From positions 4,898,001 to 4,962,000 of the forward strand of contig OZ176058.1 in the NCBI GenBank assembly GCA_964247055.1: a stretch of 64,000 nucleotides of DNA, written 5' to 3'. Positions 1 through 60,542 of the stretch are shown here, piece after piece (the first letter of the stretch is position 1; each line of letters starts with the position of its first letter). The translations under genes were made by a program, and so were the position numbers. The notes under the pieces are model-generated. The model did no database searches. It was not told the DNA's origin and worked only from the letters and a program-made list of their open reading frames with translations. Source of the DNA: Paragordius varius. Taxonomy: Eukaryota > Animalia > Nematomorpha.

Positions 1-39
1 GTAAATATTTATCAACATGACATTTAAATATTACAAATT

Positions 40-1030: not shown

Positions 1031-1469
1031 TGATGTCATTTCGGCAACTTAAAAACACTTTCGAAGCTATATTATATTTAATTAATGTTTGATACTATAT
1101 AATATTACAGTCATTTAATGGCAACCCATTCAAATGAATGATGATGATATATTTATTGATAATTTTTAAATTAATTATAATTATACTATAAGATGTAAAA
1201 TTTTACAATATTTTTATGGAGATAAACTTATGTTTTCATTATTATCCTTGTAGTTATAAGTATTCATAAAGTATTTGATTTCTGCATTTTTCGATGAAAA
1301 ATATTCATTCAATAGCGACATGGGCGCTTTGCAATAAATCATTTAACTTATATATTTGAAGTAAATTTATTTACAAAATATATATAATAATATATATAGG
1401 TAAAATTAAAAAGTTTTATAATTTTTATAACCAATTAATTAATTTCTTTGTAACGCATTTTCTTTATGC

Positions 1470-3062
1470 ATGAATGATGATTCGGACACCAGTGATGAGG
1501 ACTATGTTCCCAAAATCAAAACGGTTGAAAAGTATTGTTTTGTTTTATAATGATAGGAAAAATTCTGAAACCAAAATATTGCCTGATAAAAATATAAAAT
1601 CTGATGTTTGGAAAAAATTTACCGAATTAAATGGGTAAGTAAATTATGGATTCTAAATTTTTCAAATTTTATTTATCTCCAGTTTTTAAAAGAAATATTA
1701 AGTTTAAGACCAAAACTCTATAAAATACGTTTCTTAATACCCTAATTTTATCTTACTTATAGAATGCTAAATTTTTTACCAATTTGCATTTCAAATACTT
1801 ATTTCCCCTCCAAATTATAAATAAAATAAATAACTGTCATTGTCTATGTAATTTTATAGATTCCTGTGCATATCCTTTTTTTTACCTCAAACGATAAGTT
1901 TTAATTTAAAAATTCAAGTTTTTCCAAATATACAATTATTTCACTTTGTTGATCTTTTCTCTCATTTATTCCTTTATGTTTTATAATTAAAATAATTCAG
2001 ACAACACGTAATAACTTTATGACAAATAAATTATAAATACAACCATACCTTACCATACTTTACGAATCTTATTTTTTTAATCGTTTTGGCTTGCTGAACG
2101 GAAAATAGAAATGTAAATTGGTAATGCACTCAATAGATAACTCAAAATGGTATTTAATACTTTATAGGAGGGAATAAATTTTTAAAAGTATGGTTTTCTT
2201 TTGAAATAATATATAACTAGTTTTTATTTGTCTTTTAATTTAGTAACCCAGAACGATTAAAATACTTATAAATAAATGTTTTTAGTATTCTTTATACATT
2301 TTTTACAGTAAACATCAAAATTATACAGGCTAAAAATGTTTAATTTTAAAAGACAACCATACTTTTATAAGATTGTTTTAAATTGCAAAGTATGAAATTG
2401 ATATGTATATTTACGCAATCAATTATAATTTTATTATTGTAATTAAAAATTACGGTTTATAAAAGTATGGTTGCCTTTTAGAAAAAAATATTTGATTTAT
2501 ATTTTTATGTTTTGTCCGTATAATATCAGTGCTTACTGTACTTTTATTTTTTAGCAACCTCAAAAATTTTAATATAAAGTTTTTGTCTTTTAGTTTTTAA
2601 ATATTACTTCTACATAATTTCAATTTTTTGCTTTTTATTAGACAAGACCTAAAAAATCCGGAAGACAACGAAAAAGTTCTTAGGGATCAACAACCTAAAC
2701 CCAATTCTAGTAAAAGGAAAAAATGTGATGATGGTAATACTTTATTTGCCAATAATAATCAGCATAAAAATAGCTGCCTTTCTTCATCAAAATCATCAAG
2801 CAATATTTTATTACAGAATTTTGGCAACTCCTGCTGTACGACAAAGAAAAAAACGTCAACAGTGCTAAGTATGACACAATCGAGTTGGTCTCACCTACAA
2901 AATAATATTGAGTCAATTGAGGGCATAAATAAGCAAGAGTTTTCGAATGATCTGGAAAGATTTATTAAAAGTAAGGGCAGTGCCGTTGGTCAACTTGAAT
3001 TTTTAGCCAAGGTTGATAGACTTAGTCATCAAGCTGACCTTAGAGCAAAACGAAAATTGTGA
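1470..3062 (+). CDS. CFDP1: Craniofacial development protein 1 / Swc5-like, BCNT-C domain, left-arm copy, ~186 aa
   Basis: Exons 1470-1531, 1557-1634 and 2642-3062 join in frame with GT-AG introns (intron 1 is 25 nt). The N-terminus MNDDSDTSDEDYVP matches the acidic DEDYVP motif. The C-terminus KKTSTVLSMTQSSW...GQLEFLAKVDRLSHQADLR resembles BCNT-C (KxSTLEKSxLDW...FLDRVD). Family assigned from recalled motifs. Confidence 0.85.
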
Positions 3063-4760
3063 TTGATAAATAAATTATATTAAGTTTTTTAAAAGAAAAA
3101 AATTGTTATATAACAGTAAAAATGTATAGAAAGACAAAACAGAAAAAGTAAGTTTGAAACGATATTGAGTCAATTGAATGGGTTAACAAACAAAAGTTAT
3201 CATATGGTTAAAATTAGCAAAAAGTTATCGAATGATCTCGAAAGATTTACTAAAATAAACGCAGTGCGGTTGGCTAACTTCAATTTTTAGCCAGAGTTGA
3301 TACACTATGTCATCAAGCCGACCTTAGAGCAAAACGAAAATTGTGATAAATAAATTTACTATATTAAGTTTTAAAAGAAAGTTTATGAAGCCCAGTAAAA
3401 ATTATAAAAAGACAAAACAGAAAAAATAAGTATAAAACATATTGAGTCAATGGTGAAGGGGTTAACACATAAAAGTTATCATATGATTAAAAGCAAAGAA
3501 TTATCTAATGATCTGGAATGATTTACTAAAATAAATGAAAATTGGTCAATTTCAATTTTTAGCCAAGGTTGATACACTTAGCCATCAAGCCGACCTTAGA
3601 ACAAAACGAAAATTGTGACAAATAAATATATGAATTATATATATCTTAAAAGTAAAAATATAGTTAAATAACTTAGTAAAACTTTATTTAAAGACAAAAC
3701 AGAAAAAATTTTATACAGCACAATTTTGAGGGTTTTAACAAACAAAAGTTATCATATGATTATAAGTAGCAAAGAGTTTTTGAATGATCTGAAAAGATTT
3801 AATAAAAGTAAGGGCAGTACGGTTGGTCATCTTCAATTTTAAGCCAAGGTTGATAGACTTAGTCATCAAGCACTTAGAACAAAACGAAAATTGTGACAGA
3901 TAAATAAATTAAAATCATAATGCGTTTTAAATGAGAAAAATTTAGGTTTTTGAAATGTATTAAATATTATATTATAATACAAAACAGAAAAAGTAAAGTT
4001 TTGTTAACACTTATCGATTGGAGGGTTTAATACACAAGATTTATCATGATTATAAGTAGCAAGCTATCGAAAGATCTGAAAAGATTTACGAAAAGTAAGG
4101 GGAGTGCCGTCGGTCAAATTTTATTTTTGGCAAGAGTGGATGCGCTATATAACATAAGGCACTTGGAGCAAAACGAAAATTGTGACAAATACATGAATTA
4201 TAATGAGTCTTAAAAGATATAGGTTAAGGCGTTTAAAATGCAGTAAAAATATTACATGACAAAACAGAAATTGACTAAAACTTAGGATGCGGTTATTTTT
4301 TAGCCAAAGTTACTGGTTATCAAGCCGACCTTAGAACAAAACGAAAATTGTGATTATAAATAAATTGTAATCGGTAAAAGTAAAAGTGTTTATAAAGACA
4401 AAACAGAAAAAGTATTTTTAAAACAACACATTTTCATTTGGCATTAACAAACAAAAGTTATCATATGACTAAAAGCGAAGAGTTATCGAATGATCTGAAA
4501 TTATTAAAATAAACACAGTGCAGTTGGTCAAATTTTATTTTTGGCAAGAGTTAATGCGCTTAAAACATAAGGCTGATCTTAGAACAAAACGAAAATTGTA
4601 ATATAATTAAATTCTATATATTTTTTAAAGATGCTATATAACCCAGTAAAAGTTTATAAAAAGACAAAGCAGAAAAAGGAACCTTATGTTTTTTGAATAA
4701 AAGAAAGGATTAATAAACACGAGATATCCTATGATTGAAGGGATTAACCATTAGAGTTAT
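3063..4760 (+). repeat. Tandem array of ~170-290 bp units, each an echo of the CFDP1 last-exon 3' end and stop
   Basis: The motif 'cttagarcaaaacgaaaattgtga' recurs ending near 3346, 3618, 3896, 4185, 4353 and ~4600, becoming more degenerate with distance. Confidence 0.9.
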
Positions 4761-5088: not shown

Positions 5089-8000
5089 TTAATTCAATTT
5101 TGTGTTTGAATTCGGATTTTTTTTCCTCCTAAAAACTTTTTGATTCATTCTTCTTCGCCCATTTTTGTGGGCAAGTTTGCCTTTTTTTATATTGTTTCTT
5201 CTTTTAGGTTTATTTGGTTTAAAATGTCCTTGATTTAGCATTTTATTTTTATGGCGTTGACGATTGTATGGATTAACCACTATAAAATGTCGATGTTTTT
5301 TACCTTTCCCTGATGTTTTATGCTTGGGATAAATTACTGGTACAAAATCACTGTAATGAAAATATTCAAAGGGATATTCCTCGTACGAAGCAAAGTTGTT
5401 GCCAGACCTCTGAAATAACTCCTATTTTGTAAGTAAAAACTGAAATTATACGGACAAAACGTTAAAATAAAACGAAAATACTATTAAGATAAAAGGTAAA
5501 AAAGTAAGCTTATAATCATTTTACGAAGCAAAGTTGGGGCCAGGCCTCTGAAATAACTTCTATTATTATATTACAGTAAAAATATAAATTATACGGACAA
5601 AACGAAAAATATAAAAACACATGTTTTTTTTCTAAAAGACAAACATAGTTTTTAAAACATTAATTTCAAAATATTGTTTTAAGTCCACGAGCTCACAAAA
5701 AATACAGGCAGGGGAGTATGAAATATCATAATAGTTTATTAAAAACACAATGAATTCTTAATTCAATTGTAACTAAATAGCTTATGTGAGAAAAATTATT
5801 TGTCAGTAAAAATATATATTAAGTCAAAATTGGATTTAGTATAAAGATAAAGTAAATATTTAATTATATAAAAATAAAACCTAATCGAAATTACACGGAC
5901 AATACTTAAAATAAAACGAATATACTCTAAAGATAAAAGGTAAAAAAGCAAGTAAAATAACTCCTGTTTTGTACATTATATATTACAGTAAAAATTAAAA
6001 TTAGCATAAAGGTATAGTATAAAATGTATAAAGATACTGTAAACTGAAATTATACGGACAAAAAGTTAAAATATACGAACAAATTTTTTTTTCAAGACAT
6101 CCATACTTTTATAAACCTTAATTTTTCTATAATATAATTACAATTATAAAATATATAATTGATTGTGTCACCAATATACATATCAAATTTTCTTTACAAT
6201 TTAAAACAATGAGTTAATTTTTAAAATGAAGTTTAAAAAAGTAGGGATGTCTTTATAGTTTTAGGTTTTGTCTGTATAATTCCAATTTTTACTGTAAAAC
6301 ATAAAAATTAAGTCAACCATACTTTTTGAAAACATATGTTTTAAATTCGTGTTGAAAACAAGTGTATAAGGATGATGATTTTACACCCTTCATATATACA
6401 GTAAAAATTGAAACTTTACGGACAAAACGTAAAAATATAAAGACAAATATTTTTCCAAAAAGACAACCTACTTTTTAAAATTAATTTTTTAAATATAACT
6501 CATTGTTTTAAACTACAAAATATAATATAAAAATGTAAATTGTTAACACATTCAATTATGTATTATACGATTGTAATATAAGGTTTAAAAAATGGTTGTC
6601 CTTTTCTTTTGTAAAAAAATATTGTCTAGTTTATTTTTACATTTTGTCTGTATAATTTCAATTTTTACTGTATATTTGAAAATTGTAATTTTAAAGTTTA
6701 TCTAGGCATCATAAATCCTAAACATTTTCCCCAAAAGCGAATACAACTCATTGGTGAGTGCGAGATGAGTTATAGACGGATAGGTTAGTAAAAAAGTTAA
6801 TATATAATAAAACATTGCGACATATCTTATGTAAGAAATAGCAATTTTTATGGATGTCTTTTGAAAAAAAATTGTGTTAATTTTAAAATTATGTCTGTAT
6901 AATTTTATTTTTCACGGTTAAAAAAATGTCATGCATCCTTTATTTTATCAAAAATTTATTTTCTTTCGTTAAATGGGTAGGTATAAATATTTGGTAAAGA
7001 ATGGAAAACAAGAGCTATACTTATAGTATTAACAATCATATTCATTAAATAAGTTTAAGTATTACGATAGGGCTCTTGTATTTTCCATTTTTTACCAAAT
7101 AAATATTTATACCCTTTAATGAAAAAAAACAATTTTTTAGATAAACGGATACATGACTGTAATTCAATACGCAACTATATAAATTTATATTTTTCTTTCA
7201 TAAACTATATAATAAGATTTAAAAACTGAATTATATTTAAAATAGAGGGGTTAAAGATATGGTTGACATCTTTCCAAAAAATTTGCCTATAAGTTTTAAA
7301 TTATTTTGACTTTTAAAACGTAAAAATTCCATATAATTTTTAATAAAACAGTTAAGCTTGCTTGATTTATATATAACCGAACGGATTACATTTATAAAAT
7401 ATATATTTGAAAGTAAATTACGCCCTCTTGAATCATAAAAGGCTATGTTTCAAAAAGTATGGTTGTTTTTTTAAAAAAAATTTTGTCCGTTGGTTTTATT
7501 TGTATGTATAATTTTAATTTGTACTGTACTGATATTTTTTAATAAGACTACTTATTTCTTTATATAACCCAAAATATTGCTATCATGAATATATGATTGA
7601 AAGCTTAATTAAAATCTATTTTGCGACAAGGTAGCCAGGTTACATAAAGAGATTAGGATATTAGAAAGTATGATAATTGATATTATACAAACAAAACATA
7701 AAAATAAAAAGACAAATTTTTAAAAGACAACCATACTTTTTAAATCTTGATTTTTTTAAATATGGCTCATTATTAATCTGTAATGTATCAAAAACATATG
7801 GAAATAGGAAACTTCATCAATTTTATATTTTACAGTAGTAGGTACATATTATTAGTATTAAAGTTTTAAAAAAATATGGTTGTCTTTTTAAAAAAAATAT
7901 TTGTCCATGTTTTACGCTTTGTCCGTAAATTTTTATGTTTACTGTATGTCTGTCCTTTTAGTAAAAAGAAATTCGTCCGTTTGTTATTTTGACTATACTA

Positions 8001-8673
8001 TATAAATTTGATTTTTTTTGTAAAAACAGTCATATTTTTCAGTTTTATATACCTAGGTGATCTCTATTTTATATCTCAAATATAAATTAAGGTTTTTAAA
8101 AATATATGTTGCAAAAAAAATTTTATTAGTAAAACTTTAATTTTTACTGTATAAATATTTTACTGTCATGTATCCTTTATTTTATTTGAAATATATTTTT
8201 TTTCGTTAAATTTGTATAAATACTTGGTAAAGAATGTAAAAAAAACAAGAGCTTTATGGTAATTTTTTCTACTTTTTTGATGAATATGATATATTGTTGT
8301 TACCAGAAAGCTTTTGTTTTTTCCATTCTTTACCAAAAATTTGAACCCACCCATTTAACGAAAAAAAATAAATTTTTGATAAAATACAAAGGATACATGA
8401 CTGTATTCATTTTACTGTATTTTCGGCATTTATCGGTCGTCCCCCTTGTTCAGGGTAAAAAGAATTATCATTATAAACATCAAATTGGTCAAATGTTTGA
8501 GGATTTCGTGCTGAATTTCTCCATTTTTTTCGTCGCAATAAATTTGAATTAATTTTCTTTTTTCCCAAAGCTGATGATTGGCTTTTCACAATTCCATGAT
8601 TTTTAATCGAAATTGTAAAAGTAATATGCAGAATGATAAATATAGATTTACATGTCTTTAATACAGTAGTCAT
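5089..8673 (-). CDS. Orphan two-exon gene, putative secreted basic protein, left-arm copy, ~196 aa
   Basis: Exon 1 (8673-8416, MTTVLKTCKSIFIILHITFTISIK...INAENT) and exon 2 (5421-5089, ELFQRSGNNFASYEEYPF...) join in phase 0 via GT-AG. The reading frame is conserved in the right-arm copy. No family recognised. Confidence 0.6.
5422..6000 (-). repeat. Echoes of the orphan gene exon-2 acceptor and first codons (left arm)
   Basis: Copies of 'tag|gagttatttcagagg...ttgcttcgta' near 5520-5560 and 5955-5975, each preceded by a MITE-A terminus. Confidence 0.7.
6399..6670. mobile_element. MITE family A (representative copy), Tc1/mariner-type, TA-flanked
   Basis: Structure TA|CAGTAAAAATTGAAA...GGACAAAACG ... 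TTTTGTCTGTATAATTTCAATTTTTACTG|TA with ~80 bp TIRs. Dozens of whole or partial copies occur across the window. Confidence 0.85.
6927..7159. mobile_element. MITE family B, near-palindromic
   Basis: The end GGATACATGACTG|TA and the internal fold-back match 8163-8403. The left end is degenerate. Confidence 0.7.
8163..8403. mobile_element. MITE family B (TIR CAGTCATGTATCC, TA-flanked)
   Basis: TA|CTGTCATGTATCC ... GGATACATGACTG|TA, almost fully self-complementary. Confidence 0.8.
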
Positions 8674-10237
8674 GGTTGATTTTATAACATATATTTAAAT
8701 AGTTATTAAATATAACCAACAATCATTTTTATTTAAATTATTAACATAATATCTAAAAATTTTCAATTCGATAAAAAATGCCGTCAATTTATGTAAAGTA
8801 TAAACTCTAAAATATAATACAGTAAAATTTGAAATTATACGGACAAAACTCAAAAATATAAAGACAAATATTTTTTTCTAAAAGACAACATTCATACTTT
8901 TTTAAACTTCATTTATAAAAAAAATTGATATCTATATTGGTGACACAACCAATTATATAGATTATAATTATATAATTTATCTAAGGTTCATAAAAGTATG
9001 GTTGTCTTTTAGGAAAAAATATTCTTTATATACGTTTTGTCTGTATAATTTCAGTTTTTACTGTATTTACTCACTGGTAAAAAATGCCGTAAATTTATGT
9101 AAAGTATAAAAACTAAAATATAATACAGTAAAATTTGAAATTATACTATGGACAAAACCTAAAATTATAAAGACAAATATTTTTTCTAAAAGACAATATT
9201 CATACTTTTTTTAACATTCTTTTTAAAAATATATATCATTGTTTTAAATTTTAAATTATAAAATATATATATGTATATTGGTGACACAATCAATTATATA
9301 TTTTTTAATTAAAATAAAATTTGAAAACTAATGTTTATAAAAGTATGGTTGGTTCTGTTTTAGAAAATAATTTGTCCGTATAATTTCAGTTTTTACTGTA
9401 TATTTCTCCTATAAAATTTTGATATTTTTAACGCAAACCCATCGTTTTAAGTCACGAAATTAAAATAAAATATACCCTTAAAATTTCAAAACTAATATTT
9501 TTTTAAGAAAACCATAATATGGTTGCCCGTTTTAGATTTTGTCTTACTTGCTGTTTTTTATATTTTTAAAGCAGTATCAATTTGGTTTAAAAATTGAAAT
9601 TTACAGACAAAACTTAAATCATTAAGTAAAAGGAAAAAAATTTAGAGTAAAAATTGAAATTTTACGGACTAAATCTAAAATATAAAGACAAATATTGTTT
9701 TCGAAAAGACAACCATAATTTTAAAATCTTAATTATTTTAATAATACTCATTGTTTTGAACTGATTATGAAATAAAGATGTTAATTTGTAAAACAATCAA
9801 TTATTAAAGTTGAAATTAAACAATTATTATAGGATAAATCAAGGTTTTATAAAGTATGGCTGTCTTTTGAAAAAATTGTTTTTATATTTTTACGTTTTGT
9901 CCGTATATTTCAATTTTTATTGTATGTTTCAAGAGACAACCATACTTTTTTGCGCCTTAATTATATTAATTAGTAATATTTGTATATAATTGTTTGCATT
10001 TAAAACAATGAGTTATACTTGAAAAAAAAATCAAAAGTACGGGAGTCTTTCAAAAAATATTATCGTATAGTTTTGCGTTTTGAGTGTATAATTTAAATTT
10101 CAAACTATTTTAAGTAAAATAGTTATATTTTATTAAACTTTGATATTTATTAAGTGAGGACATATCGTTTTAGGTCAAGAATTATAGTGAATATTAAATT
10201 ATTCAAGTAATAAAAACTCAAAAACAAAAAGAACATA

Positions 10238-11869: not shown

Positions 11870-14800
11870 TTATAATTTCAAAATAATTAATGCCACGCAC
11901 AAGAGTAAAACTAAAAAAGCCAACGAGAAAATGCATAAAAGTTTGCCATAAGACGCTCTGCTATGCAAAGTGGCCGCTTTAGTTAATTCGGTTAATCCTG
12001 TGCTTATGGTTTGCGTGGAATGTTCAATACTGTAATCGATACGATCTAACGTTGTACCCTATATATGTATACAGTAAAAATTGAAATTATATTAAATTGC
12101 CGAGTTTTTATACAATAAAAATGGTAATTTTACAAAATGTAAAAGAATTTTTTTTAGATAAACCGTTAAATAAACTTGTTTTTTAAACTAGATTTTTTTA
12201 AAAATAACTCATTGTTATGAGTTGCGAAACTAGAATACATTATATATAAAGTAAAAATACGGACAAAACATAAAAATATAAGGACAAATATTTTTTAAAA
12301 AAAGACAACCATACTTTAATCTCATTTTTAGAAATATAACTCATTGTTTTAAACTGTTAAGTATAAAATAGATATTATATTGGAGACACAATCAATTATT
12401 TATGATAATTTATCTAAAAAAGATTATTTATAAAAGTATCGTTGTCGTTAAAAAAATTGTCCGTATAATTTCAGTTTATACTGTATGTAAAATAAACCCC
12501 TAAAAAATAAAATTGTGACAAAAATCTTTATTTTTATGTTTCCTATGTATAATTTAAATTTTGTGTAATTAATATTTACAAGTTAGTTTATATTTTAATT
12601 TTATTTTTTACGTTTGACAAATAGTACTGTAGTAATTTAACATTCACCCCAATAAATTCATTTAATTTTAACTGTATAATAATTGCATAAATAATATAAA
12701 TTAGCCTTAGGTATTTTTTAAGCTATATAAAGGTAAAAATATGTGCAATACGAGATGAATCTTAAATTATATTAGAGTTTTATGAAACAAAAAAATTATA
12801 TTTTAAATTTAAAATAAATTTTAAAAATAAAATTTTTACCTGATCGTGGACCAAGGTGCCTATATCCTGGAAAAGAGCATTTAAATCCTGAATAGATTGC
12901 ACAAGACTATTAATTTCATTTTCCTTGTGCCTGTAATAACTCAATTCCCCATCAATGTCAGAAAACAGTTTCTCCCTTTTTTGTAAAGATGTCTATATTA
13001 AAATAAATAATTATATTAATAAATTTTTTTTTTCAAACATAATAATAATGTTTTAATTTGGAAATTTTATAAACTATCAAAAATTGTATAAATTATATAA
13101 ATAATAAAGCTAAAAGTTAAATAATAATATTTAATTTGAAAATAATACAAGACTTTTTAATAATTGTATAAATATTAAGAATATAAAAAATTTCATAAAT
13201 AATAATGTTTTCCAAATACTACACAAATGCTCCACATAATTATATAACATCGATTGTTTAAATAATTTATATATATACTAATAATTTAAATTAATAATGT
13301 TTTAATTTAATGATCGTAATTACATTAAAAATTGAAATATACGAATAAAATGTTAAAATATAAAGACAATTTTTTTTCTAAAGACAACCAAATTTTTTAA
13401 ACCTTGATTTATTGTAGTTTAAATCAATAAATTATATTTTAAGAAAATCAAGATAAAAAGCTGGTTGTATTTTTAAAAATTATTGGTCTTTATTCACGTT
13501 TCCGTAGTTAATTTTTACTGTAATAAAAAAAAGCTTATAATTTGTTTAAATTTATATATTATATTATATTCACTAAATAATACTGTTTTAATTCAAAATT
13601 TTTAGATAAAAATTATCAAAAATTGTAAAAATTTATAAACTTATATAAAAAATGTTTAATTTAGAAATTAAAAATATTATTTTTTTAAAATTAATTACAA
13701 TAATAAAAAAAAGTTTATAACTTTTTTAATCCAAAAACTATTATATTATATTTCTTAAATATAATGTTTCAATTTGAAATTTTTTAAAATTTTAGTTAAA
13801 ATAAAAAAATATTAACAAAAATTTAGATAAGAAAAAGTTAATTTTTTTAAAATTATTCAAATATTTTCCATATAATTATAAATAAAAAAAAAGTTTATGA
13901 AATCAATTATATACTAAAAAAGTTTCAAAATAAAATGTTTTAATTTGAAACTCGTAATTATAATTTTTAAAAAAGAATCCAATATTTCGATATAAACTAT
14001 TTAAAACTAACTTTTTGAAGGTGTTCAAAATTTAAGTTTAAGGAGTTTTCATTTGATTGTTGATGGTTCATTATATCAATTTCAGACATTTTAACATTAT
14101 TATCGGTGGTGAGGTTTTGAGAATGCGACGAAGTCAATTTATTTTCCCACAAAATTTTTGTATTGATAGTTTCATCGTGTTCCTGAATAGTTTTTTATTA
14201 TTATTACAAGTAAAAATTAAAAGACAAAATAGGTAAAAATATAAAGAATATTTTTATTTCTAAAAGACAACCAACTCCATACTTTTTAATTAATATACCA
14301 TTTGCAGTTTAAATTCACCCTTGTGAACAATTCGAATTCACCCTTGAACGAACAATCAAATTCACCTTTGAACTAATTAAACTCACCCTTGAACTATTCA
14401 AACTCACTTTTAAACAATCAAATTTACCCTTGTGAACAATTTGAATTCATTTGAACTATTTAAATTCACCTTTGAACTATTAAACATCACCCTTGAACAA
14501 TTCAAATTAACCCTTGAACAATCATATTCACCCTTAACAATTCAAAATGACCCTCGAAACAATTTAAATTCACCCACGAACAAATCGAATTCTGATTAAA
14601 ATTCAAAATCACCCTTGACAATACAAAACCCTCGAACATTTCGAATTCCCCCTAAATGTGTTTTGGTGATTAAAATTAACTATATTATTGTTTAATATTT
14701 TTTAAAATATGAAATTCTGTTTAAAATTCATATAATGCTGAAAAAATATGAAACTATGTCCAAAAAAAATATTTCATATTAATGATGAGTTATAATAGAT

Positions 14801-20776: not shown

Positions 20777-20817
<41 letters not shown>

Positions 20818-24980: not shown

Positions 24981-25103
24981 AACGCCGGGATTCCGCAATA
25001 GAATTTTTATATGCTAAATTTTGACATCAAATAAATATTTTTTTAATAAATGCATAATTTCAGAAATTCAATTTTAAGCAAAATTTTGTTTTTCCTATTT
25101 TTA

Positions 25104-28799: not shown

Positions 28800-28843
<44 letters not shown>

Positions 28844-29521: not shown

Positions 29522-29585
<64 letters not shown>

Positions 29586-35050: not shown

Positions 35051-35088
<38 letters not shown>

Positions 35089-35329: not shown

Positions 35330-35372
<43 letters not shown>

Positions 35373-46902: not shown

Positions 46903-49900
46903 ATGACTACTGTATTAAAGACATGTAAATCTATATTTATAATTTTGCACATTACAACAATGATTTCGATTAAAAATCATGGAATTGTGAAAAGTCAATC
47001 ATCAGCTTTGGGAAAGAAAATTAATTCAAATTTATTGCGACGAAAAAAATGGAGAAATTCAGCCCGAAATCCTCAAACATTTGACCAATTTGATGTTTAT
47101 GATAACTCTTTTTACCCAGAACAAGGGGGACGACCTATAAACGCCGAAAATACAGTAAAACAAATACAGTCATGTATTTTTTTTATTTTATCAAAAATTT
47201 ATTTTTTTTCCGTTAAATGGGTGGGTATAAACATTTGGTAATGAATGGCAAAAAACAAGAGCTTTATGGTATTAACAATATATCATATTCATCAAAAAAG
47301 TATAAGAATTACCATAGAGCTCTTGTTTTTTACATTCTTTACCAAAAATGTATACCCCCATTTAACGAAAAAAAATAAATTTTTGATAAAATCAAGGATA
47401 CATGACTGTAAAATATTTATATTGTAAAAATAATTGAAATTATACGGACAAAAAAGTTTTTTTGCCACCATATACAGCAAAAATTGAAATCATACGGACA
47501 AAACGTAAAAATATATAGGCAAATAATTGTAATTGTATCCACAAGAAACAATCATACTTTTTAAAACCTTAATTTTTCTCATATAAGCTATTTAGTTACC
47601 GTAAAATACAGAATTGATTGTGTTAGTAATATATAAATCTCTATGTTGACTTAAAACAATAAGTTATATTGATATAAATCAAAAAAATATTTGTCTTTAT
47701 ATTTTCACGTTTTGTCCATATAATTTCAGTTTTTACTGAATTATTTAAACTTTAATTAATAATACACGAGATATAGAATAGAGATGACCTAGGTATAAAA
47801 AACTGAATAATATGACTGATTTTACAAGAAAAATCAAATGCATATAGTATAGTCAAAATAACTAACGGACGAATTTCTTTTTACTAAATGGACAGACATA
47901 GAGTAAACATGAAAATTTACAGACAAAGCGTATTATATGGACAATTTTTTTAAAAAAAACCTTAATACTTATATAAAATATGTACCTACCACTGTAAAAT
48001 ATAAAATTGATGGGGTTTTATATTTCCATATGTTTTTGATACAATACAAATTAAAATAATGAGCCATATTTAAAAAAATCAGGATTTAAAATGTATGGTT
48101 GTCTTTTAAAAAAATATCTGTCTTTATATTTTTACATTTTGTCCGTATTTCAATTTTTACTGTATTTTTTTTCCTTTTTCTTTATGATTTAAGTTTTGTC
48201 TGTAAATTTCAATTTTTAATCTAAATTGGTACGCACCTCCTTCAAATCAACATGCTTTAAAATATTAGTGCAGATAAGATAAGACTATATATAAAAATGA
48301 CAACCATATTAATGGTTTTCTTATAAAAATATTAGTTTTAAATATTAAGTTTATATATTATTTTAATTTCGTGACTCACAACGATGGTTTGCGTTTATAA
48401 TATCAAAATTCAATATGGAGAAATATAAAGTAAAAACTGAAATTTACGGACAAATATTTTTTTCTAAAAGACAACCATACTTTTATAAACTTTAATTTTT
48501 CTCATATATATTGCAATTTTAAAATATAAAATTAATTATGTCACCAATATAAATATAAATTTTATACTTTAAAATTTAAAACAAAGATTTATATTTTAAA
48601 ATGAAGTTTAAAAGGATGTTGTCTTTTAAAAAAAAATATTTATATTTTTAGGTTAATTTCAAAATTTAGTGTATTAATGTTTAGCTTTTATTCTTTACAT
48701 AAATTATACTACATATTTTTTTACCAAATAGAGAATTTTAAGATAATATGTTAATCATTCAAATAAAAATGATTGTTGGCTATATTTAATAACTACTTAA
48801 ATATGTTATAAAATCAACCATGACTACTGTATTAAAGACATGTAAATCTATATTTATAATTTTGCACATTACTATTACAGCAATAATTTCGATTAAAAAT
48901 CATGGAATTGTGAAAAGCCAATCATCTTTGGGAAAAAAGAAAATTAATTCAAATTTATTGAGGAAAAAATGGAGAAATTCAGCGCGAAATGCTCAAACAT
49001 TTGATTCTTTTGATGTTTATGATAATTCTTTTTACCCTGAACAAGGGCGACGACCAATAAACGCCGAAAATACAGTAAAATGAATACAGTCATGTATCCT
49101 TTTTATTTTAGTAAAAATTAATTTTTTTTGTTAAATGGGTGGGTATAAATATTTGGTAAAGAATGGAAAAATACAAGAGCTTCTTGGTATTAACAATATC
49201 ATATTCATCAATAAAGTATAAGAATTACCATAGAGCTGTTGGTTTTCCGTTCTTTACCAAGTATTTATAACCCATTTAACGAAAAAAATAGATTTTTGAT
49301 AAAATCAAGGATACATGACTGTAAAATATTTATACTGTAAAAATAATTGTAATTATACGGACAAAAGTTTTTTTGCGACCATATATTTTTTTAACATTAA
49401 TTTATATTACTCAAGATATAGAATAAAGCTTACCTAGGTACAGTAAAAATTGATGATATACGGACAGAAGTAAAAATATAAAGACAAATATTTTTTAAAA
49501 GACAATTATATATTTTTTAAACTTGATATTTTATATTCATTGTTTTAAATGGCAAAGTGTGAAATAGAAATATTTGTCCGCATAATTTCCATTTTTACTG
49601 TATATATTGAGGGTGTTACTAAAATCATCATCCCTTTTACTTGTTTTCTAACACGGATAAAAAACATATATTTTCAAAAAGTATGGTTAACTTAATTTTT
49701 TGTTCTATCTTTATACTAAGTTTAATTTATACCAGTGGTACTCACCAAAAAAATTTGACGGGCCAAATAAAATATATTTTTTTTTCGAGGGTCATGAACC
49801 TTATAATGGCAAATATTCCATAGCTATTTGACACATATGCACATATTATACACTAAATCAGTACAATAGATTTTTTGCGGTTCGCATGCAAATCCAGCTA

Positions 49901-52505
49901 AAAACTTGTTTTGCACCACTTAGTTTATAAAATTAATATACATAGATAACAACATTATTTTGATATTAACCAATAATTTTTGACAAATCTGGTTTCCTCA
50001 TGACAGGCCGATCTTAGTCGTCCATATGATTATCGGTTAAGCGATTTCTGTATGTATTCTTGAAATACTATATTTTTATATATGCCTCTCACACGTGTAG
50101 GTTGAGGGAAAAACAGTTAGAATAACTTGAGCACATTTTTTATATTTTCATATTTATTTGGTGATCTTGCCAAAACTCTACCTATCTTTCTTATGTACAA
50201 TTCTCCTTGAAAGCCTACAAATTGGAATCATTTTTAATATCTATGAATTCTTTCATGGTATGCGCCTGATATCCGAAATGCTCATGTTGCTTAATAATGG
50301 GTATATCCATATGCCATGGATTTTCAAAATTTACGTTTTTTAGCATTAGATGCTTTGAAACTATGAAATATTATGTAATTTTTTTCAAAAAAGGAATATA
50401 ATTTGAATTATGCTATAAAAAACAGGACGAAATATAATGCTGTTGATTTGAAAAATATTTTATGGGAATGAGTTATAAATAAATGATGCAGGATAGCAAT
50501 GAAAAGAATTAGTATATGCAAGTTTAGGTGAAAGGCGTGCTTAAAGAAAAAAAAAGGAATACAAAAATTTTAAAATAGAAAAGATAGAATACAAAAAAAG
50601 AAACATTATGTGCCAAAATTTTAAAATCATTTTAATGTGGGAAATTTTTCTAAATTTCAAATTGGTTAAAAAATAAAAATTACCAAAATTAAATCTAAAG
50701 AAAATAAATTAATAATAAAATAAGAGAAAATTCGTTTATGTGTATTTTAAAAATTCATTAAAAAAATAATTTAAGTAATATGTCATAGGGCAAATTTAAA
50801 ACAATCTTTGGGCCGCGGTTTGAGTATCACTGATTTATACTGTCCTTATATCCCACTTTGCAACTCAAAAAATTCAAATATGGTTTGAAAAAAGTATAGT
50901 TGACTTTCAAAAATGTTTGACTTTTATGTTTTACGCTTAATTTTAATTTTTACTGTATCGTTTTTAATAAATCCAAATTGGTCTTAATATAATTTAAATT
51001 TTTATTGTAATATATAATGTACAAAACGGGAGTTATTTCAGAGGCCTGGCAACAATATTGCTTCGTACGATAATTTTAAGCTTAATTATCTTTATAATAT
51101 TTTCGTTTTATTTTACGTATTGTCCGTGTAATTTCGATTAGGTTCTATTTTTATATAATTTAAATATTTACTTTATCTTTATACTAAATCCAATTTTGTT
51201 TTTATATAAATTTTTACTTACAAATATTTTTCTCACATAATTTATTTATTTACAATTATAAAATATATAATTAATTGTGTTAATAATATACTATTTTAGA
51301 CTTAAAATAATGAGTTATTTTGAAATAAATTAAGCTTTTAAATAGTATTTTTGTCTTTTAGAAAAAACATGTGTCTTTATATTTTACTTATCGTCCGTAT
51401 AATTTCAATTGTTATTGACAAAATAGGAGTCATTTCAGAGGTCTAGCAACAACTTTGCTTCGTATGATGATTTTAAGCCTACTTTTTTGCCTATTATCTT
51501 TATAGTATTTTCGTTTTATTTTACGTATTGTCCGTATAATTTTAATTAGGTTTTATCTTATAATATTTTTTTCTTTATATACAGTAGTATATAATGTTCA
51601 AAAGAGGAGTTATTTCACTTGCCTTTTTAGCTTTTGTCTTATATTTTCGTTTTTCAGTAAAAATTGAAATTATATGGACAAAACGTAAAAATATATAGAC
51701 AAATATTTTTTTCTATAGATACTTTTTAAATTTAGATTTATTTCATTATAACTCATTTTTTTAAATGGCAAAATGTGAAATAGAGATATTAATACTAATA
51801 CAATCAATTCTATATTTAATGATTGTAACTAAATAGCTTATATGTGAAAATTAAGGTTTTAAATAGTATGTTTGTCTTTTAAAAAAACATCTGTCTTTTT
51901 ATTTTTACGTTTTGTCCGTATAATTTCAGTTTTTACTAACAAAATAGGAGTTATTTCAGAGGCCTGGCCCCAACATTGCTTCGTAAAATGATTATAAGCT
52001 TACTTTTTTATTTTTTACTTTAATAGTATTTTCGTTTTATTTTCACGAATTGTCCGTATAATTACAGTTTTACTGACAAAATAGGATTTTTTTCAAAATC
52101 CTAACAACTTTGCTTCGTGCGATGATTATAAACTTACTTTATTACCTTTTTTTATAGTTTTTGCCTTTTATTTTACGTTTTGTCAATATAATAAATTTTT
52201 CTGTACTGACAAACTAGGAGTTATTTCAGAGGCCTGGCCCCAACTTTGCTTCGTACGAGGAATATCCCTTCCAATATTTTCATTACAGTGATTTTGTACC
52301 AATTATTTATCCCAAGCATAAAACATCACTCAAAGGCAAAAAACATCGACATTTCATAGTGGTTAATCCATACAATCGTCAACGCCATAAAAATAAGATG
52401 CTTAATCAAGGACATTTTAAACCAAATAAACCTAAAAGAAGAAACAACAGAAATAAAGGCATACCTGCCCGCAAAAATAATCCAAGAAGAATAAATCAGA
52501 AATAA
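46903..52505 (+). CDS. Orphan putative secreted protein, right-arm copy, with two tandem first exons
   Basis: Exon 1a (46903-47154) and exon 1b (48820-49074) both end INAENT|GTAAAA in phase 0. Exon 2 (52218-52505, ELFQRPGPNFASYEEYPF...) has a shorter C-terminus than the left copy. Confidence 0.6.
47167..47408. mobile_element. MITE family B
   Basis: TA|CAGTCATGTAT ... GGATACATGACTG|TA. Confidence 0.8.
49087..49321. mobile_element. MITE family B
   Basis: TA|CAGTCATGTATCC ... GGATACATGACTG|TA. Confidence 0.8.
49733..50832 (-). mobile_element. Non-autonomous hAT (Buster-type) element, 1100 bp, right arm only
   Basis: TIR CAGTGGTACTCA / TGAGTATCACTG, perfect 8-bp TSD ATTTATAC, and a transposase C-terminal remnant on the minus strand (KCAQVILTVFPSTYTCE). 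Confidence 0.9.
51000..52217 (+). repeat. Echoes of the orphan exon-2 acceptor and first ~14 codons (right arm, ~5 units)
   Basis: 'aaaatag|gagttatttcagaggcctgg...ttgcttcgta'-like copies near 51025, 51425, 51605, 51945 and 52082, each behind a MITE-A end. Confidence 0.8.
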
Positions 52506-52879: not shown

Positions 52880-55800
52880 ATGGTTAATCCCTTCAATCAT
52901 AAGATAACTCGTGTTTATTAATCCTTTCTTTTATTCAAAAAACATAAGGTTCCTTTTTCTGCTTTGTCTTTATATAAACTTTTACTGGGTTATATAACAT
53001 CTTTAAAAATATATAGAAATTAATAATATCACAATTTTCGTTTTGTTTTAAGGTCTGCTTGATGACTAAGTGTATTATATTTAGCTAAAAAATTAACCGC
53101 ATCCTTACTTTTTGTGAATCTTTCCAGATCATTCGATAAATCTTTGCTACTTATAATCATATGATAACTTTTGTTTGTTAATACCCTCAATTAAAAATTG
53201 TGTTGTACAATATTACTTTTTCTGTTTTGTCTCTTTAAATAATATTTTTACTCTGCATTTTAAACGCCTAAACCTTTTTATTTTAAGACTATATATATAA
53301 TTCATTTATTTATTCATCACAATTTTCGTTTTGTTCTCAGGTCTGCTTGATGGCTAAGTATATCAACCTTGGCTAAAAATTGGAGTTGACCAATTGCACT
53401 TCGTTTATTTTAGTAAATCATTCCAGATCATTCGATAATTTTTTGCTTTTAATCATATAGTAACTTTTATGTGTCAACCCCTTCACGATTGACTCAATAT
53501 GTTTTATACTTACTTTTTCTGCTTTGTCTATATAAACTTTTACTGCAGTTTAAGCGCCTAAACTTCTCTTGCAAGACTGTATATAATTCATTTATTTATC
53601 AATCACAATTTTCGTTTTGTCCTAAGATCTGCTTGATGACTAAGTGTATTATACAACTTACTTTTTGTGAATCTTTCGAGATCATTCGATAAATCTTTGC
53701 TACTTTTATTCATATGATAACTTTTGTTTGTTAATACCCTCAATTGAAAATTGTGTTGTACAAAATTACTTTTTCTGTTTTGTCTTTATATAATTTTTCT
53801 CTTTTAAAACTTATATTAATTTATTTGTCACAATTTTCGTTTTATCCTAAGGTCAGCTTGATGACTAAGTGTATCAACCTTGGCTAAAAATTGAAGTTGA
53901 CCGACGGCACTCTCCTTACTTTTAGTAAATCTTTCCAGATCATTCGATACCTCTTTGCTACTTTTAATCATATGACAACTTTTGTTTATTAAAACCCTCA
54001 AAATTGCGTTGCACAAAATTACTTTTTCTGTTTTGTCTTTATCTAAAGCAGTGGTACTCACGAAAAAAATTTGACGGGCCAAATAAAATATATATTTTTT
54101 TCGAGGGCCAGAATCTTATAATGGCAAATATTCCATAGCTATTTGACACATATGCACATATTTATACGCTAAATCAGCACAATTAATTTTTTGCGGATCG
54201 CATGTAAATCCAACTAAAAACTCGTTTTGCACCATTTAGTTTAAAAAATTAAAATATTAACATTTATTTTGATATTAACCAATAATTTTTGACAAATTTA
54301 GCTTCGCCTCATGGTAGACCAATCTTAATACGTCGTCCATATGATTATCTAAGCGATTTCTGTATCTATTCTTGAGATACCCTATTTTTGAATATGCTGT
54401 CCACGGGTAACTTGAGAAAAAACAGTTAGGATAACTTGAGCACATTTTTTATTTTCATTATTTGGCACATCTTGCCAAAACCATACATATCTTTCTTCTC
54501 TTCGATTCTCCTTATATATAGCCTCCGAATCGGAATCATTTATAAAATCTACGAATTCTTCAATGATATGCGCCTGATCAAAACCGAGATGCTCAAGTTG
54601 CTTAATATTGGATATATCCATACCATGGATTTTTTACGTAAGCAATTTTTAATATTTCTTAGTTCTTCAAATCTGAATTTCAATTCATTAAAAAATGCTA
54701 AATAATTGTCTATTTTAAATGTTGAAAAATATAGGAGTGTTTTATTTATAAATTCTTGTTTATATATTATTTATTTTTCTTGAAAAGCAAATATTTGATT
54801 ACCAAATTGGGTTATTATTTTGCTCCCTTGAAAACTTGTATTAAGATTAAGTCTATAAGTAAATGTCACAAAGGTAGGCAATAAAACCCACCATTGGTCA
54901 CTATTAATTTCGTCAAACTTTCTGTTATCTAAATAATACAATCTCATGTCTTAAAACAAAAAATGTATTTTATACTTTGCTAAGGCTTAGCCATCTAGCG
55001 GTGTATAAAATAATAACATCAAACTCACTGTGAATATCTTTCAAAAGGTTTAGAATTTACGGCTGTTAAGTTCGATGTGGTTAACTATATCCACAACCGT
55101 TTTAATTACTGAATTGAGTGATTCATCTTTTACACGCGAAACCATGTTTTGCTGTTGAGTAAATATTTTTCAAATTATATTTGTTTTTCAAAAGAGGGAT
55201 AAATCCTTCGTTTCATAGAGGGACAGCCATCTGTGCAGATCGAAACCAATTTTTTTCATATATATATCATTATTATCGAAAAAAGTGCTACCACTTTCTT
55301 TTATTAGTTGGGAATCAGTAAATGGTTTCATATTTGTTCCTAAAATACAAATTTCATACGAAGCTAATGTTACAGCATTTCCTGGGAGAAAGCTATAAAA
55401 ATAATAGATTTTCTTTCTGGTATAATTCCTTAATTTTTTATTTTTTTCGTTTCTTTCCTTATGATTTTCTGGTAATTTATGAGAATGATGGATTGTAAAA
55501 TGTCTTTCAACATTGTATTTTTTTATAATTATGTTGTCCTTGCATATAAGGCAGGTATCAAAATTTTTAAAAACGACAAAGAATTTTTCTTCCCATTCCT
55601 TTTTAAAGAGCGATTTTTATCGGATAATTTACGTTTTTTAGCAAATTTTTGCAAAAAATAGGAATATAATTTGAATTATGCTATAAAAAATAGGTAAAAA
55701 TTTAATGATGTTGATTTGAAAATAATTTTATGGGAGTTATAAAAAATGATGCAGGATAGCAATGAAAAGAATGTGTATATGCAAGTTTGGGTAAAAAGCT

Positions 55801-57823
55801 TGCTTAAATACAAAAAAGGAATCCAATAAAAATTTCAAAATAGAAAAAAAATAGAATACAGAAACAGAGACAACGTGTGTCAAAATTTAATCATTTTATG
55901 TAGGGAAATTTTTCATTTCAAATTTGATAAAAAAAAATTACGAAATAGATACAAAGAAAATAAATTAATATTAAAATAAGCGAAAATTCGTTAATGTGTA
56001 TTTTAAAAATTCATCAATAAAAATATGGTCATAGGGCAATTTTAAAGCACTCTTAGGGCCGCATGCGGCCCACGGGCCGCGGTTTGAGTATCACTGATCT
56101 AAAGTTTTACTAAGTTATATAACAATTTTTTCGCTTTTAATACTCAATAAAATTCACTTATTTATTTATCACAATTTTCGTTTTGTCCTAAGGTCAGCTT
56201 GATGACTGAGTCTATCAAACTTGGCTAAAAATTGAAGTTGACCGACGGCACTGCCCTTACTCTTGGTAAATCTTTCGAGATCATTCGAAAACTCTTGCTT
56301 ATTTTAATCATATGATAAAACTTTTGCTTGTTAACCCATTCAATAGACTCATGTTTTATTCTTACTTTTTCTGTTTTGTCTTTATATAAAATATTTACTA
56401 CAATTTAAACGCCTAAACTTTTCTCTTTAAAACTTTATATATTATTCATTTATTTATCAATCATAATTTTCGTTTTGTTCTAAGATCTGCTTGATGGCTA
56501 AATGTATCAACTTTAGCTATTGTTAGCCATATTTATGATAAATCTTTCTGAATCATTTGATAACCTCTTACTTTTTACTACCTTTAATTAATAACTCTCA
56601 ACAAAATTACTTTTTCTGTTTTGTCTTTATATAAATTTTTACTTTAAAGACTCAATATAATTCATTTATTTATCAATTACAATTTTCGTTTTGTTCTAAG
56701 ATCTGCTTGATGACAAAGTCTATCAACCCTGGCTAAAAATTGAAGTTGACCAACGGCACTGCCCTTACTTTTAGTAAATCTTTCGAGATCATTCGAAAGC
56801 TCTTTACTACTTAGAATCATATGATAGATAAATTTTGATTGTCAATACCCTCAATTGAAAATTGTGTTGTACAAAATTGCTTTTTCTGCTATTTCTTTAA
56901 ATAATATTTAATGGGCTTCATAAACTTTCTTTTAAAATTTAATATAATAAATTTATTTATCACAATTTTCGTTTTGCTCTAAGATCTGCTTGATGACTAA
57001 GTGTATCAACCCTGGCTAAAAATTGAAGTTGACCGACGGCACTGCCCTTACTCTTGGTAAATCTTTCGAGATCATTCGAAAACTCTTGCTTATTTTAATC
57101 ATATGATAAAACTTTTGCTTGTTAACCCATTCAATAGACTCATGTTTTATTCTTACTTTTTCTGTTTTGTCTTTATATAAAATATTTACTACAATTTAAA
57201 CGCTTAAACTTTTCTCTTTTAAGATTGATTATAATTCATTTAATTTATTTATCACAATTTTCGTTTTGTTCTAAGGTCAGCTTGATGACTAAGTCTATCC
57301 ACCTTGGCTAAAAATTGAAGTTAACCGACGGCACTACCCTTACTTTTAGTAAATCTTTCGAGATCATTCGATAACCATTTGCTACTTTTATTCATATGAT
57401 AACTTTTGTGTGTTAATACCCTCAATTGAAAATTGTGTTGCACAAAATTACTTTTTCTGTTTTGTCTTTATATAAAGTTTTACTGGGCTTCATAAACTTT
57501 TTTTTAAAACTTAATATAATTTATTTATCAATCACAATTTTCGTTTTGCTCTAAGATCTGCTTGATGACTAAGTGTATCAACCCTGGCTAAAAATTGAAG
57601 TTGACCGACGGCACTGCCCTTACTCTTGGTAAATCTTTCGAGATCATTCGAAAACTCTTGCTTATTTTAATCATATGATAAAACTTTTGCTTGTTAACCC
57701 ATTCAATAGACTCATGTTTTATTCTTACTTTTTCTGTTTTGTCTTTATATAAAATATTTACTACAATTTAAACGCTTAAACTTTTCTCTTTTAAGATTGA
57801 TTATAATTCATTTAATTTATTTA
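52880..57823 (-). repeat. CFDP1 last-exon echo array, right arm (~10 units of ~220-290 bp), interrupted by a hAT element
   Basis: 'tcacaattttcgttttg' near 53030, 53318, 53605, 53828, 56170, 56462, 56678, 56960, 57253 and 57533. The stretches ~56960-57250 and ~57535-57820 are near-identical. Confidence 0.92.
54049..56096 (-). mobile_element. Internally deleted hAT (Buster-type) element, 2048 bp, right arm only
   Basis: Same TIRs as 49733-50832, perfect 8-bp TSD ATCTAAAG, a subterminal GGGCCGCATGCGGCCC motif, and degenerate minus-strand transposase motifs KLVSICTDGCPSM and KNRYRNRLDNHMDDVLRL. Confidence 0.9.
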
Positions 57824-59145
57824 TCACAATTTTCGTTTTGTTCTAAGGTCAGCTTGATGACTAAGTCTATCCACCTTGGCTAAAAATTGAAGTTGACCAA
57901 CCGCACTGCCCTTACTTTTAGTAAATCTTTCTAGATCATTCGATAACTCTTGCTTGTTAATGCCCTCAATTGATTCAATATTATTTTGTAGGTGAGACCA
58001 ACTTGATTGTGTCATACTTAGCACGGTTGACGTTTTTTTCTTTGTCGCACAGCAGTTGCCAAAATGTTGTAATAAACTATTGCTTGATGATTTTAATGAA
58101 GAAAGACAGCTATTTTTATGCTGATTATTATTGGCAAATAAGGTATTAATATCATCACATTTTTTCCTTTTACAGGAAACGACATATGAATTGGGTTTAG
58201 GTTGATCTTTAATAAGTTCGTTGTTTTTGGGATTTGTTAGGTCTTGGCTAATGAAATTTCATTTAAAAGCAAGCAATATCTGAATACTAAAAGACAAATA
58301 TTTATAAAACTTGATTTTCTCAAAAACATTTATTAAAAATTTGAGTTTTAAGAATTAACTAATCGTTCGGAGTTACCAAAATAAGAAGGCATACAAATTG
58401 AAATTATACATTAAAACAAAATAATATTAAAACAAAATTTTTAAAAATTAATTATTTCCATATAAATTTACCATTTTGATCTATCAATTATGAGTGCTTT
58501 ACCAATTTATGTCGCTTTTACGCGTTCGACAACCCAAAACGATTAAAGAAAGAATTGAAAAGTATGGTATGGTTGTATTTTAAAATAATTTGTATAATTT
58601 TAATTTTGATTATAAAACTAAAGGAATAAATGAAATAAAAGGTAAACAAAGGGAAATTTGTATAATTGTTGAAAGATTGATTTTTTAAATTCAAACCTAT
58701 CGTTTGAGGTGGCAAAATATATAAGCAAGAAATTAAAAAGCAAATATATTAAAAATGGATATTTAATCTATTTTATTTATAATTTTGGGGCAAAATAGTT
58801 GAGATGCAAATTGGAACAATTTAGTATTATGGGTAAAATAAAATTAGATATTAATTGCTGTCATAAAAAATATATTTTATAAATTTGTAGCCTTCTTTAT
58901 AAATATCAATTTTTTCATTTCTTTCAAAAACAACTATTAAAAAAATCGTAATAAAAATTTAAAACTCTATAATTACTTACCCATTTAATTCGGTAAATTT
59001 TTTCCAAACATCAGATTTTATATTTTTATCAGGCAATATTTTGGTTTCAGAATTTTTCCTAATATTATAAAACAAAACAATACTTTTTTACCGTTTTGAT
59101 TTTGGGAACATAGTCCTCATCACTGGTGTCCGAATCATCATTCAT
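57824..59145 (-). CDS. CFDP1: CFDP1 / BCNT-C domain protein, right-arm copy, ~187 aa
   Basis: Exons 59145-59084, 59058-58981 and 58247-57824 are in frame. The 25-nt intron 1 is conserved, and exons 1-2 differ from the left copy at only two codons. Confidence 0.85.
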
Positions 59146-60542
59146 GCATAAAACAAATGCGTTAAAATTAAAAAATTAACTTTTTTTTAAATGGTTGTAA
59201 TAAAAATAAGTAAAATCAATTTAATATAAATATCTATATAAATATATATATATATATTTTAAATAAACTTAGTTGATATATATTAATTATAACTTCTAGT
59301 ATTAACCTCATCAACTGGTTAACACTTTGATTAATTGGGGTATCTCAATACCCAAGACTTAAGAATTTTTAAAAAACTACTGAAGAATAAGTCAAAAATT
59401 TAAAGTTGTGGATCTATCCTAATAAAAATTATATAAATATGTAAAAATAACCAAATAAAATTTTGTTTTGGAAAAAAAGTTCCATGTAAACTACTACGAC
59501 GCGACTTTTATTTTACAAAATCTTCCAGAATATCATCTTTTTATATTTAAGGGTAAAATTAAAGCTGTTTTTATTTAAATTATATATTGATGGAAATAGA
59601 AAAAGCGGTTAATTTTGTATTATTTTTCAATTTTTTCATTGCTACAATACCTTAACTAAATTCTTCCCTTTCGGTTTTAAAACGAGTAATTTTAAGTATT
59701 TTTGAATAAAAATTTTTTATATTTTGGTTTATTAATGTTATATAAGTGCAAAATTTTGCCATGGTTTCGATTCCTTCCATACTTTTTAAATTAGCTGATT
59801 TTAAACAGGCATGGGGTTTACAAGTGCGTTGTATCCAAATGTTAATCATATTCCATAATCATGACATTATAATGTATATTTTTGATAGAATGCATCAGAT
59901 ATTATTGAGCAGTTCAAAAATATTAAATTTGTGGTAGTTTCACTACAGAGTTTTTAAAAAATTTACTCTGTTGCAATAAATGTTTTATTGATAAATGACT
60001 TAGTATTAAAATGTACCAATAAAAATTTACAAAAGGTCTAAAAATAATCCTTTTGCCTAAATTTATTAATGAGTTCATATTTTTGCTAGAATATGACATA
60101 AAATTAATAGAAATTTTATAAAAAATTAGATTTTTATCAAAACTTAATAAAAAGCTATAAATTTATTTTATACGTTTACTTAAAACGATAATTTAGTGTT
60201 GAGGTATTTTTTCGAGAACCCTATAAAGGCAAAGAATATAACTCTGCACATTTTTCATATAGGTATATGGGTAGGGGTATTACTGTTACAAATTTACTAT
60301 AAATCAGAAGATATTATATAAATTTGTAAAAAAATGTAAATTTATTTTTGTCAATTTCCTAAAGCCGAAATAATCGTGATAAATATTATCAAAAAAATTC
60401 TAGTTTTTTGAATTTTTTGGTTACTTAAGAAACTTGCTTTCATAAATGGGGTCGGGAATTACAAAAGTTTAAAAAGCCCTATTATATATGCCATTAAAAA
60501 GTATTAATACAACTGTATCACATTTATTAACCACTAAAACAC

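Follow-up and report, generated by a model that had tools for sequence, protein, structure and literature searches.

A cluster of four syntaxin-16 gene blocks, assembled as two palindromes, in the genome of Paragordius varius

A 64,000-nucleotide stretch of the genome of Paragordius varius (Nematomorpha), positions 4898001-4962000 of contig OZ176058.1 (contig C9 in the analysis) and referred to below as the window, contains, as assembled, a large palindrome with the same three genes on both arms. The genes are one for syntaxin-16 (STX16), one that resembles BCNT/CFDP1, and an unnamed gene for a basic protein, which we call the orphan gene. In the assembly this palindrome is one half of a four-copy cluster. 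We consider it probable, at about 0.75, that this cluster is real, that it goes back to ancient segmental duplications that produced four three-gene cores in the form of two palindromes, and that the paralogs have been retained by selection. Statements made here on the copies, their age and their functions are based on comparisons of the assembled sequence. Window positions are counted from its first base. The window has a G+C content of 23% and is separated from the contig end by some 108 kb; the contig is 5.07 Mb long and one of 44 in an assembly of 110.6 Mb. A region of 244 kb around the window (contig 4778001-5022000) was compared with itself, and there are no Ns within it.

Comparison of the window with its own reverse complement by BLAST, followed by chaining of the matches, gave 26 colinear inverted blocks, with limits at 131/1344-24253 on the left and 59823/59289-25680 on the right. 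The left arm (BL, 1344-24253) and the right arm (BR, 25680-59289) are separated by an unpaired spacer of 1426 bp (24254-25679), about half of which is repeat-derived. The original prediction, which was made from this sequence alone, had proposed an inverted duplication around a spacer of about 1.4 kb and had suggested this same comparison, and the proposal is borne out. The arm-to-arm alignment covers 17,013 bases with a mean identity of 77.8% (individual blocks 67-92%). The aligned non-coding columns have 14.8% mismatches, that is, they are 85% alike. Gap events number 37 per kb, and only 22% of these have a length divisible by three.

The window palindrome has a counterpart. A genome-wide search for SNARE exons located four STX16 last exons, all on this contig and in the order -, +, -, +, and no other STX16-like match was found in the 110-Mb genome. 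A second head-to-head palindrome with the same three genes is located at contig 4780822-4846242, 115 kb upstream of and colinear in direct orientation with the one in the window. Its arms are called AL (left) and AR (right), and its centre is at contig 4820148-4821942. All four core copies lie within 180 kb, and the six pairwise arm identities are 75.8-79.0%. Among 7004 four-way aligned sites the three possible splits are represented by 116, 90 and 90 sites, and 1317 sites are singletons. This star-like tree implies that the duplications occurred close together in time relative to their age. For comparison, in the horsehair worm Gordionus the 10 kb to each side of the STX16 gene contain no further copy.

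The arms had been predicted to end at positions 1300 and 59330, but they run outward past the window. Contig 4891488-4897743 pairs with 4974759-4958497, and positions 59290-64000 of the window, the outward continuation of BR into a fourth gene, are matched by window positions 1-1343 and by the adjoining sequence to the left of position 1. The palindrome therefore extends over at least contig 4888080-4979932 (at least 92 kb), with this fourth gene on each side. Among the open reading frames (ORFs) common to both outer flanks are exons for hydrophobic segments, and one other encodes half of a RING motif (zf-C3HC4, E 0.049, a weak match); the gene, which we refer to as the RING membrane gene, is directed away from the palindrome centre on both sides. 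The RING-gene segment is present in four copies, one directly before AL, a tandem pair before BL and an inverted one after BR, so the block order can be written R0-AL|AR ... R1-R2-BL|BR-R3, where R is a RING-gene segment. The prediction of an old inverted duplication stands, as judged from a synonymous divergence (dS) of about 0.2 and the non-coding mismatches and gaps given above, but that of a self-contained 58-kb three-gene palindrome does not, because of the fourth gene on each side and the repetition of the core 115 kb upstream.

The left copy of STX16 occupies positions 11870-23686 on the minus strand and has nine exons with an ORF of 1305 nt; the right copy, also with nine exons, is at 26239-43938 on the plus strand and encodes 437 amino acids (aa). 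The gene model was guided by the Gordionus protein and by alignments of the copies, and all of its introns are GT..AG. The last exon, which encodes the SNARE motif and the membrane anchor, matches the Pfam SNARE profile with 35.5 bits (cut-off 26.8), includes a hydrophobic tail and is unchanged across the four copies except for one residue. The Gordionus protein named 'syntaxin-16-like' is the closest full-length protein in the library, the only named one and the second-best match overall. It aligns with the full-length model at 32% identity (E 2e-68, local pairwise), with exons mapping along its whole length, and on this alignment the relationship is a distant one. The N-terminus, MATRGLFDIFILLRNN, resembles the STX16 N-peptide, and it is retained in the three full copies. 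A search of solved structures with the SNARE exon found only syntaxin-1A (E 0.001), and one with exon 4 found nothing.

Pairs of STX16 copies have dS values of 0.20-0.27 and non-synonymous divergences (dN) of 0.03-0.05, with dN/dS ratios of 0.15-0.22. About 9% of the residues vary between the STX16 copies. The non-synonymous share on the terminal branches ranges from 3/10 to 12/24, compared with a neutral expectation of about 0.8 (each p < 0.003). The counts of synonymous and non-synonymous codons in the original prediction, 9 and 3 in exon 8 and 4 and 0 in exon 9, were reproduced exactly. In the AR copy, repeat-rich sequence has taken the place of exons 1-2 and of most of exon 3. The remaining exons 4-9 are intact and 7 of their 18 changed codons are non-synonymous (p = 0.0002); the truncated AR copy is, judging from these codons, under purifying selection.

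As had been predicted, all six gene copies in the window are open on both arms, with the BR orphan gene shortened: a 5-bp deletion drops its last 17 codons and thereby shortens the C-terminus. This deletion is the only coding indel that is not a multiple of three. The AG and GT splice dinucleotides are kept in every exon present, the exons differ in length among copies by multiples of three, and the ORFs have no internal stops. From the non-coding gap rate one would expect several tens of gap events in the approximately 2 kb of coding sequence per arm pair, whereas few are seen. Nearly every copy thus looks like a working gene retained under purifying selection, and the earlier suggestion that both arms carry intact, selected copies of normally single-copy genes is upheld by the dN/dS ratios, the splice sites and the in-frame indels.

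One could argue instead that each gene has a single working copy and that the others are slowly dying pseudogenes, still open by chance. The truncation of AR STX16, the 5-bp deletion near the end of the BR orphan gene and a stop in the second orphan first exon of AL would all fit such a history. However, every terminal STX16 branch, that of the truncated AR copy included, is far below the neutral non-synonymous expectation, the pairwise dN/dS of STX16 is uniformly about 0.2, and the few coding gaps are in-frame apart from that one deletion. We therefore regard slow pseudogene decay as very unlikely.

The orphan gene is located between STX16 and the BCNT/CFDP1-like gene and has at least two exons. 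Its left copy is at 5092-8694 on the minus strand, with a first exon within the ORF 8410-8694 and a last exon at 5129-5409, the ORF of which runs to 5092. The right copy is at 46882-52505 on the plus strand; its first exon is present twice (ORFs 46882-47238 and 48793-49080) and its last exon is at 52230-52505. The first exon is also doubled in AL, where one of the two carries the stop mentioned above. No homologue was found in word searches with either exon, and the last exon had no usable Atlas match. The singleton codons of the last exon comprise 16 synonymous and 8 non-synonymous changes, and the first-exon indels are all in-frame. Because the changes are mostly silent and these indels keep the frame, the orphan gene is, on this codon evidence, a real coding gene.

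The left copy of the BCNT/CFDP1-like gene is at 1470-3062 on the plus strand, with exons at 1470-1531, 1557-1634 and 2642-3062 that encode 186 aa, and the right copy is at 57824-59145 on the minus strand. The N-terminus of the protein is acidic, and a region at the C-terminal end matches the Pfam BCNT profile. Four of the five last-exon copies match it, up to profile positions 12-74/75, with E values of 0.04-0.075 and 13.6-14.4 bits against a cut-off of 22.2. The gene is likely, although not proven, to be CFDP1-like. Word searches found no homologues, the last exon had no match among solved structures, and a search of the whole genome with the Pfam BCNT profile returned nothing. The pairs of copies have dN/dS ratios of 0.26-0.44.

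Have the arms exchanged sequence since they were formed? In one zone this would seem to be the case. From 23130 to 26800, a zone made up of the spacer plus some 1.1 kb at the inner end of either arm (its left limit is the right one reflected by eye), BL and BR behave as sister sequences. For each STX16 copy this inner zone takes in exon 1, the sequence upstream of it and the beginning of intron 1. Over 1059 inner sites the two window arms show 23 and 37 differences of their own, compared with 125 for AL, whereas over 11,494 outer sites the corresponding numbers are 551, 897 and 776 (chi-square 77.9, p = 1e-17). These counts are consistent with a later exchange between BL and BR in the inner 1.1 kb, and they fit without a change of rate. 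Such an exchange would account for the likeness of the two STX16 copies in their upstream regions and first exons. Elsewhere, a test of the longest identical runs between the arms found no significant conversion tract (p = 0.065), although the test is unreliable and the top runs resemble local misalignment. Exons 1-2 of the BCNT/CFDP1-like gene, the near-identity of which had been suggested as a possible result of conversion, are 95-100% alike in all four copies; the same patch in four copies reflects coding constraint and does not speak for exchange between the arms. Furthermore, synonymous sites and non-coding sequence have diverged to about the same extent, and so the similarity of the exons requires no conversion.

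We propose that the ancestral block contained, in this order, the RING membrane gene, the BCNT/CFDP1-like gene, the orphan gene and STX16. An inverted copying of the block, with a fold-back or a template switch as its likely cause, may have placed two STX16 genes in head-to-head orientation. A direct copy of the core of this palindrome may have arisen shortly after, about 115 kb away, and the RING-gene segment might then have been duplicated in tandem. The copies have since diverged (dS about 0.2) as bases were substituted, transposons inserted and arrays lengthened or shortened, and selection has kept nearly every one of them as an apparently working protein-coding gene.

Several observations weigh against the reading that we prefer. 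The left boundary of homology is a high-copy repeat, a kind of site where misjoins occur. The best-supported of the three splits is (BL,BR | AL,AR), which would favour the arms of each palindrome as sisters; its excess is not significant (p about 0.1, an estimate). The family assignment of the BCNT/CFDP1-like gene is below the Pfam cut-off, and its branch tests are weak, with 6 of 9 changes non-synonymous in BL and 7 of 9 in AL. Finally, in a 31-mer screen of the central 6 kb of the window (22000-28000), no run recorded as RNA carried the stretch. In the same screen, the runs of the best-matching sample contained 0.72-0.74 of the 31-mers and those of a second sample with the same species label 0.17-0.18. 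By 31-mer arithmetic these shares correspond to divergences between samples of about 1% and about 5.5%, and the species looks very diverse at the window centre.

The structure itself could be explained in other ways. Divergent haplotypes or separate loci might have been joined in inverted orientation at the spacer repeat, or a fold-back chimera might have entered the assembly. The left arm does stop exactly where the repeat of about 400 bp begins, and even the best runs carry less than three quarters of the central 31-mers. Still, a fold-back chimera would be near-identical, whereas the arms differ by kilobase-sized insertions, by 15% mismatches in the non-coding columns and by 37 gap events per kb, and the divergence between samples is far below that between the arms. 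Four copies are incompatible with two haplotypes, the head-to-head layout recurs upstream with a different centre, the outer flanks are mirror-symmetric too, and the 244 kb are free of Ns. An assembly artefact is thus highly improbable, and we give even less credit to a very large mobile element, with long inverted termini and a cargo of host genes, that transposed once. That idea would account for two inverted-arm structures on one contig. However, no transposase or integrase ORF is common to the four copies, in which the sole large ORF is that of a long interspersed nuclear element (LINE) in one arm; the outer limits differ, and both palindromes lie in a wider tract of local duplications; and the four copies are within 180 kb, with none elsewhere in 110 Mb.

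A different order of events is harder to dismiss, though we hold it to be the less likely one. In this alternative either the direct duplication came first and was followed by independent inverted partners, or early conversion in both palindromes erased the tree. The lead of the (BL,BR | AL,AR) split would agree with it, as would the two differing centres, AR beginning inside STX16 exon 3, and the approximately 600 bp of inner sequence that AL and BR have in common and BL lacks. Against it, the excess of that split is small, two independent inverted duplications with nearly equal outer content would be required, and the layout R0-AL|AR ... R2-BL|BR-R3 is simpler to obtain by copying one existing palindrome core. 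We therefore favour the sequence of steps in which the palindrome was formed once and its core was then copied.

The remaining features of the locus can be described briefly. The repeat at the left arm-spacer boundary covers 24254-24653 and starts exactly at that boundary; a search with spacer bases 1-398 gave 3937 first-look candidates genome-wide, and among the 72 matches listed most are 85-90% identical. A second repeat follows at 24652-24974. The rest of the spacer includes old arm sequence (25074-25679) that is present in BR and AL and lost from BL, and AL at 4818665-4820148 matches contig 4924473-4923074 in inverted orientation. BR exceeds BL by 10 kb on account of the LINE, a 3.3-kb block at 53380-56641 and bigger tandem arrays. 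The LINE, which had been predicted to be specific to one arm, is indeed on the right arm only; its ORF of 1040 aa (31809-34928, plus strand) includes an endonuclease and an RVT_1 reverse transcriptase and is located in STX16 intron 3. The labels 'two hATs' and 'Penelope relic' given to other insertions are not confirmed, since the only matches behind them, to a reverse transcriptase (E 0.0036) and to a zinc finger (E 0.005), are weak.

The tandem arrays consist of copies of exon ends. Copies of the end of STX16 exon 5 form an array of about 18-19 units at 36178-39420 (plus strand) on the right arm and one of about 5-6 units at 15973-17202 on the left arm, in agreement with the predicted contrast of 6 and about 19. 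Copies of the end of the CFDP1 last exon number about 6-7 at 2927-4270 (plus strand) on the left arm and about 11 at 52950-54050 and 56100-57960 on the right arm, where 6 and about 10 had been predicted. Such arrays, which combine an exon end with adjoining non-coding sequence, are present in all four blocks in very different unit numbers (one further array is at 51897-52236), and AR is without a CFDP1 array. AL has two full-length CFDP1-like last exons 2 kb apart (5627-6040 and 7649-8083 of the piece L008).

Some intron features also deserve mention. Intron 1 of the BCNT/CFDP1-like gene is 25 nt long (1532-1556, with its mirror at about 59059-59083) and 26 nt in one copy. It is required for the reading frame and evolves like an intron: one indel of 1 nt is seen, and substitutions are more frequent than in the exons next to it. 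STX16 introns 2 and 6 and orphan intron 1 open with the same ACA|GTAAAA motif (27110-27125, 40212-40227 and about 47160), and at least STX16 intron 2 runs on into a dispersed repeat that resembles a miniature inverted-repeat transposable element (MITE). In AR, the start in STX16 exon 3 just follows a MITE-like end that supplies a TTTCAG acceptor.

Outside of the palindromes, a direct duplication (4987004-4993435 / 5002165-5008961) is 83-88% identical, and so younger, and lies 25 kb past the window palindrome. The end of the contig looks like a duplication hotspot. A search for the telomere pattern (TTAGGC)5 gave no match. An apparent symmetry of the far flanks (4846354-4857263 and 4995913-5017175) was dropped, as its largest block is a high-copy repeat.

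Syntaxin-16, the BCNT/CFDP1-like gene and their neighbours are single-copy genes in most animals. The retention of three or four apparently working copies of them over a dS of about 0.2 is unusual, and the locus would be a clean case in which to ask why duplicates of dosage-sensitive housekeeping genes survive. In addition, four copies of equal age allow the exchange in the inner arms to be polarised, which makes the locus a natural experiment on palindrome conversion. Annotators should be warned that it has four near-equal paralogs, one of them truncated, among arrays of exon ends. If the assembly should be wrong, the locus would serve as a marker of misjoins.

How does the cluster compare with known systems? 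The ampliconic palindromes of mammalian sex chromosomes (human Y P1-P8 and X-linked ones) have arms that are more than 99.9% alike through continuing conversion and carry mostly testis-expressed gene families. The P. varius locus is like them in its large inverted arms, intact genes and short spacer, and arm-to-arm exchange may be a further parallel. It differs from them in that the arms have 78% BLAST identity (85% in aligned columns), short of >99%, and conversion is seen only in the inner 1.1 kb; moreover, the genes are housekeeping genes and nothing marks the contig as a sex chromosome. One might go further and see the locus as one case of a genome-wide habit of gene-bearing inverted duplications, the inner arms of which are kept alike by conversion near the centre and which maintain several working copies of trafficking and chromatin genes that are otherwise single-copy. 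It would then be an autosomal housekeeping counterpart of the sex-chromosome palindromes, and would include an STX16 without the N-peptide and part of Habc that is maybe a new regulatory SNARE. From what the sequences tell us, we consider this larger picture quite doubtful.

Gene-bearing palindromes were reportedly present in the first assembly of the bdelloid rotifer Adineta vaga, with arms at allelic similarity, and are said to have been put down later to assembly error. Ordinary genes in an invertebrate assembly raise the same question of artefact here, but the P. varius arms are too diverged and differ in their insertions, and there are two such structures, each with a centre of its own. 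Inverted duplications that arise by fold-back or template switching, such as those of breakage-fusion-bridge cycles and DUP-TRP/INV-DUP events, are usually recent somatic or pathogenic rearrangements. The head-to-head copies, the asymmetric single-copy centre, the alternating orientation and the clustering of events apparently close in time are all features that the P. varius locus has in common with them. Unlike them, it is a fixed rearrangement of considerable age (dS about 0.2), with copies under selection; simple breakage-fusion-bridge cycles would also not give its block order, and whatever microhomology there was at the junctions has long been eroded. In conclusion, the cluster represents, in a tidy form, a type of rearrangement that is already known and not a new one.

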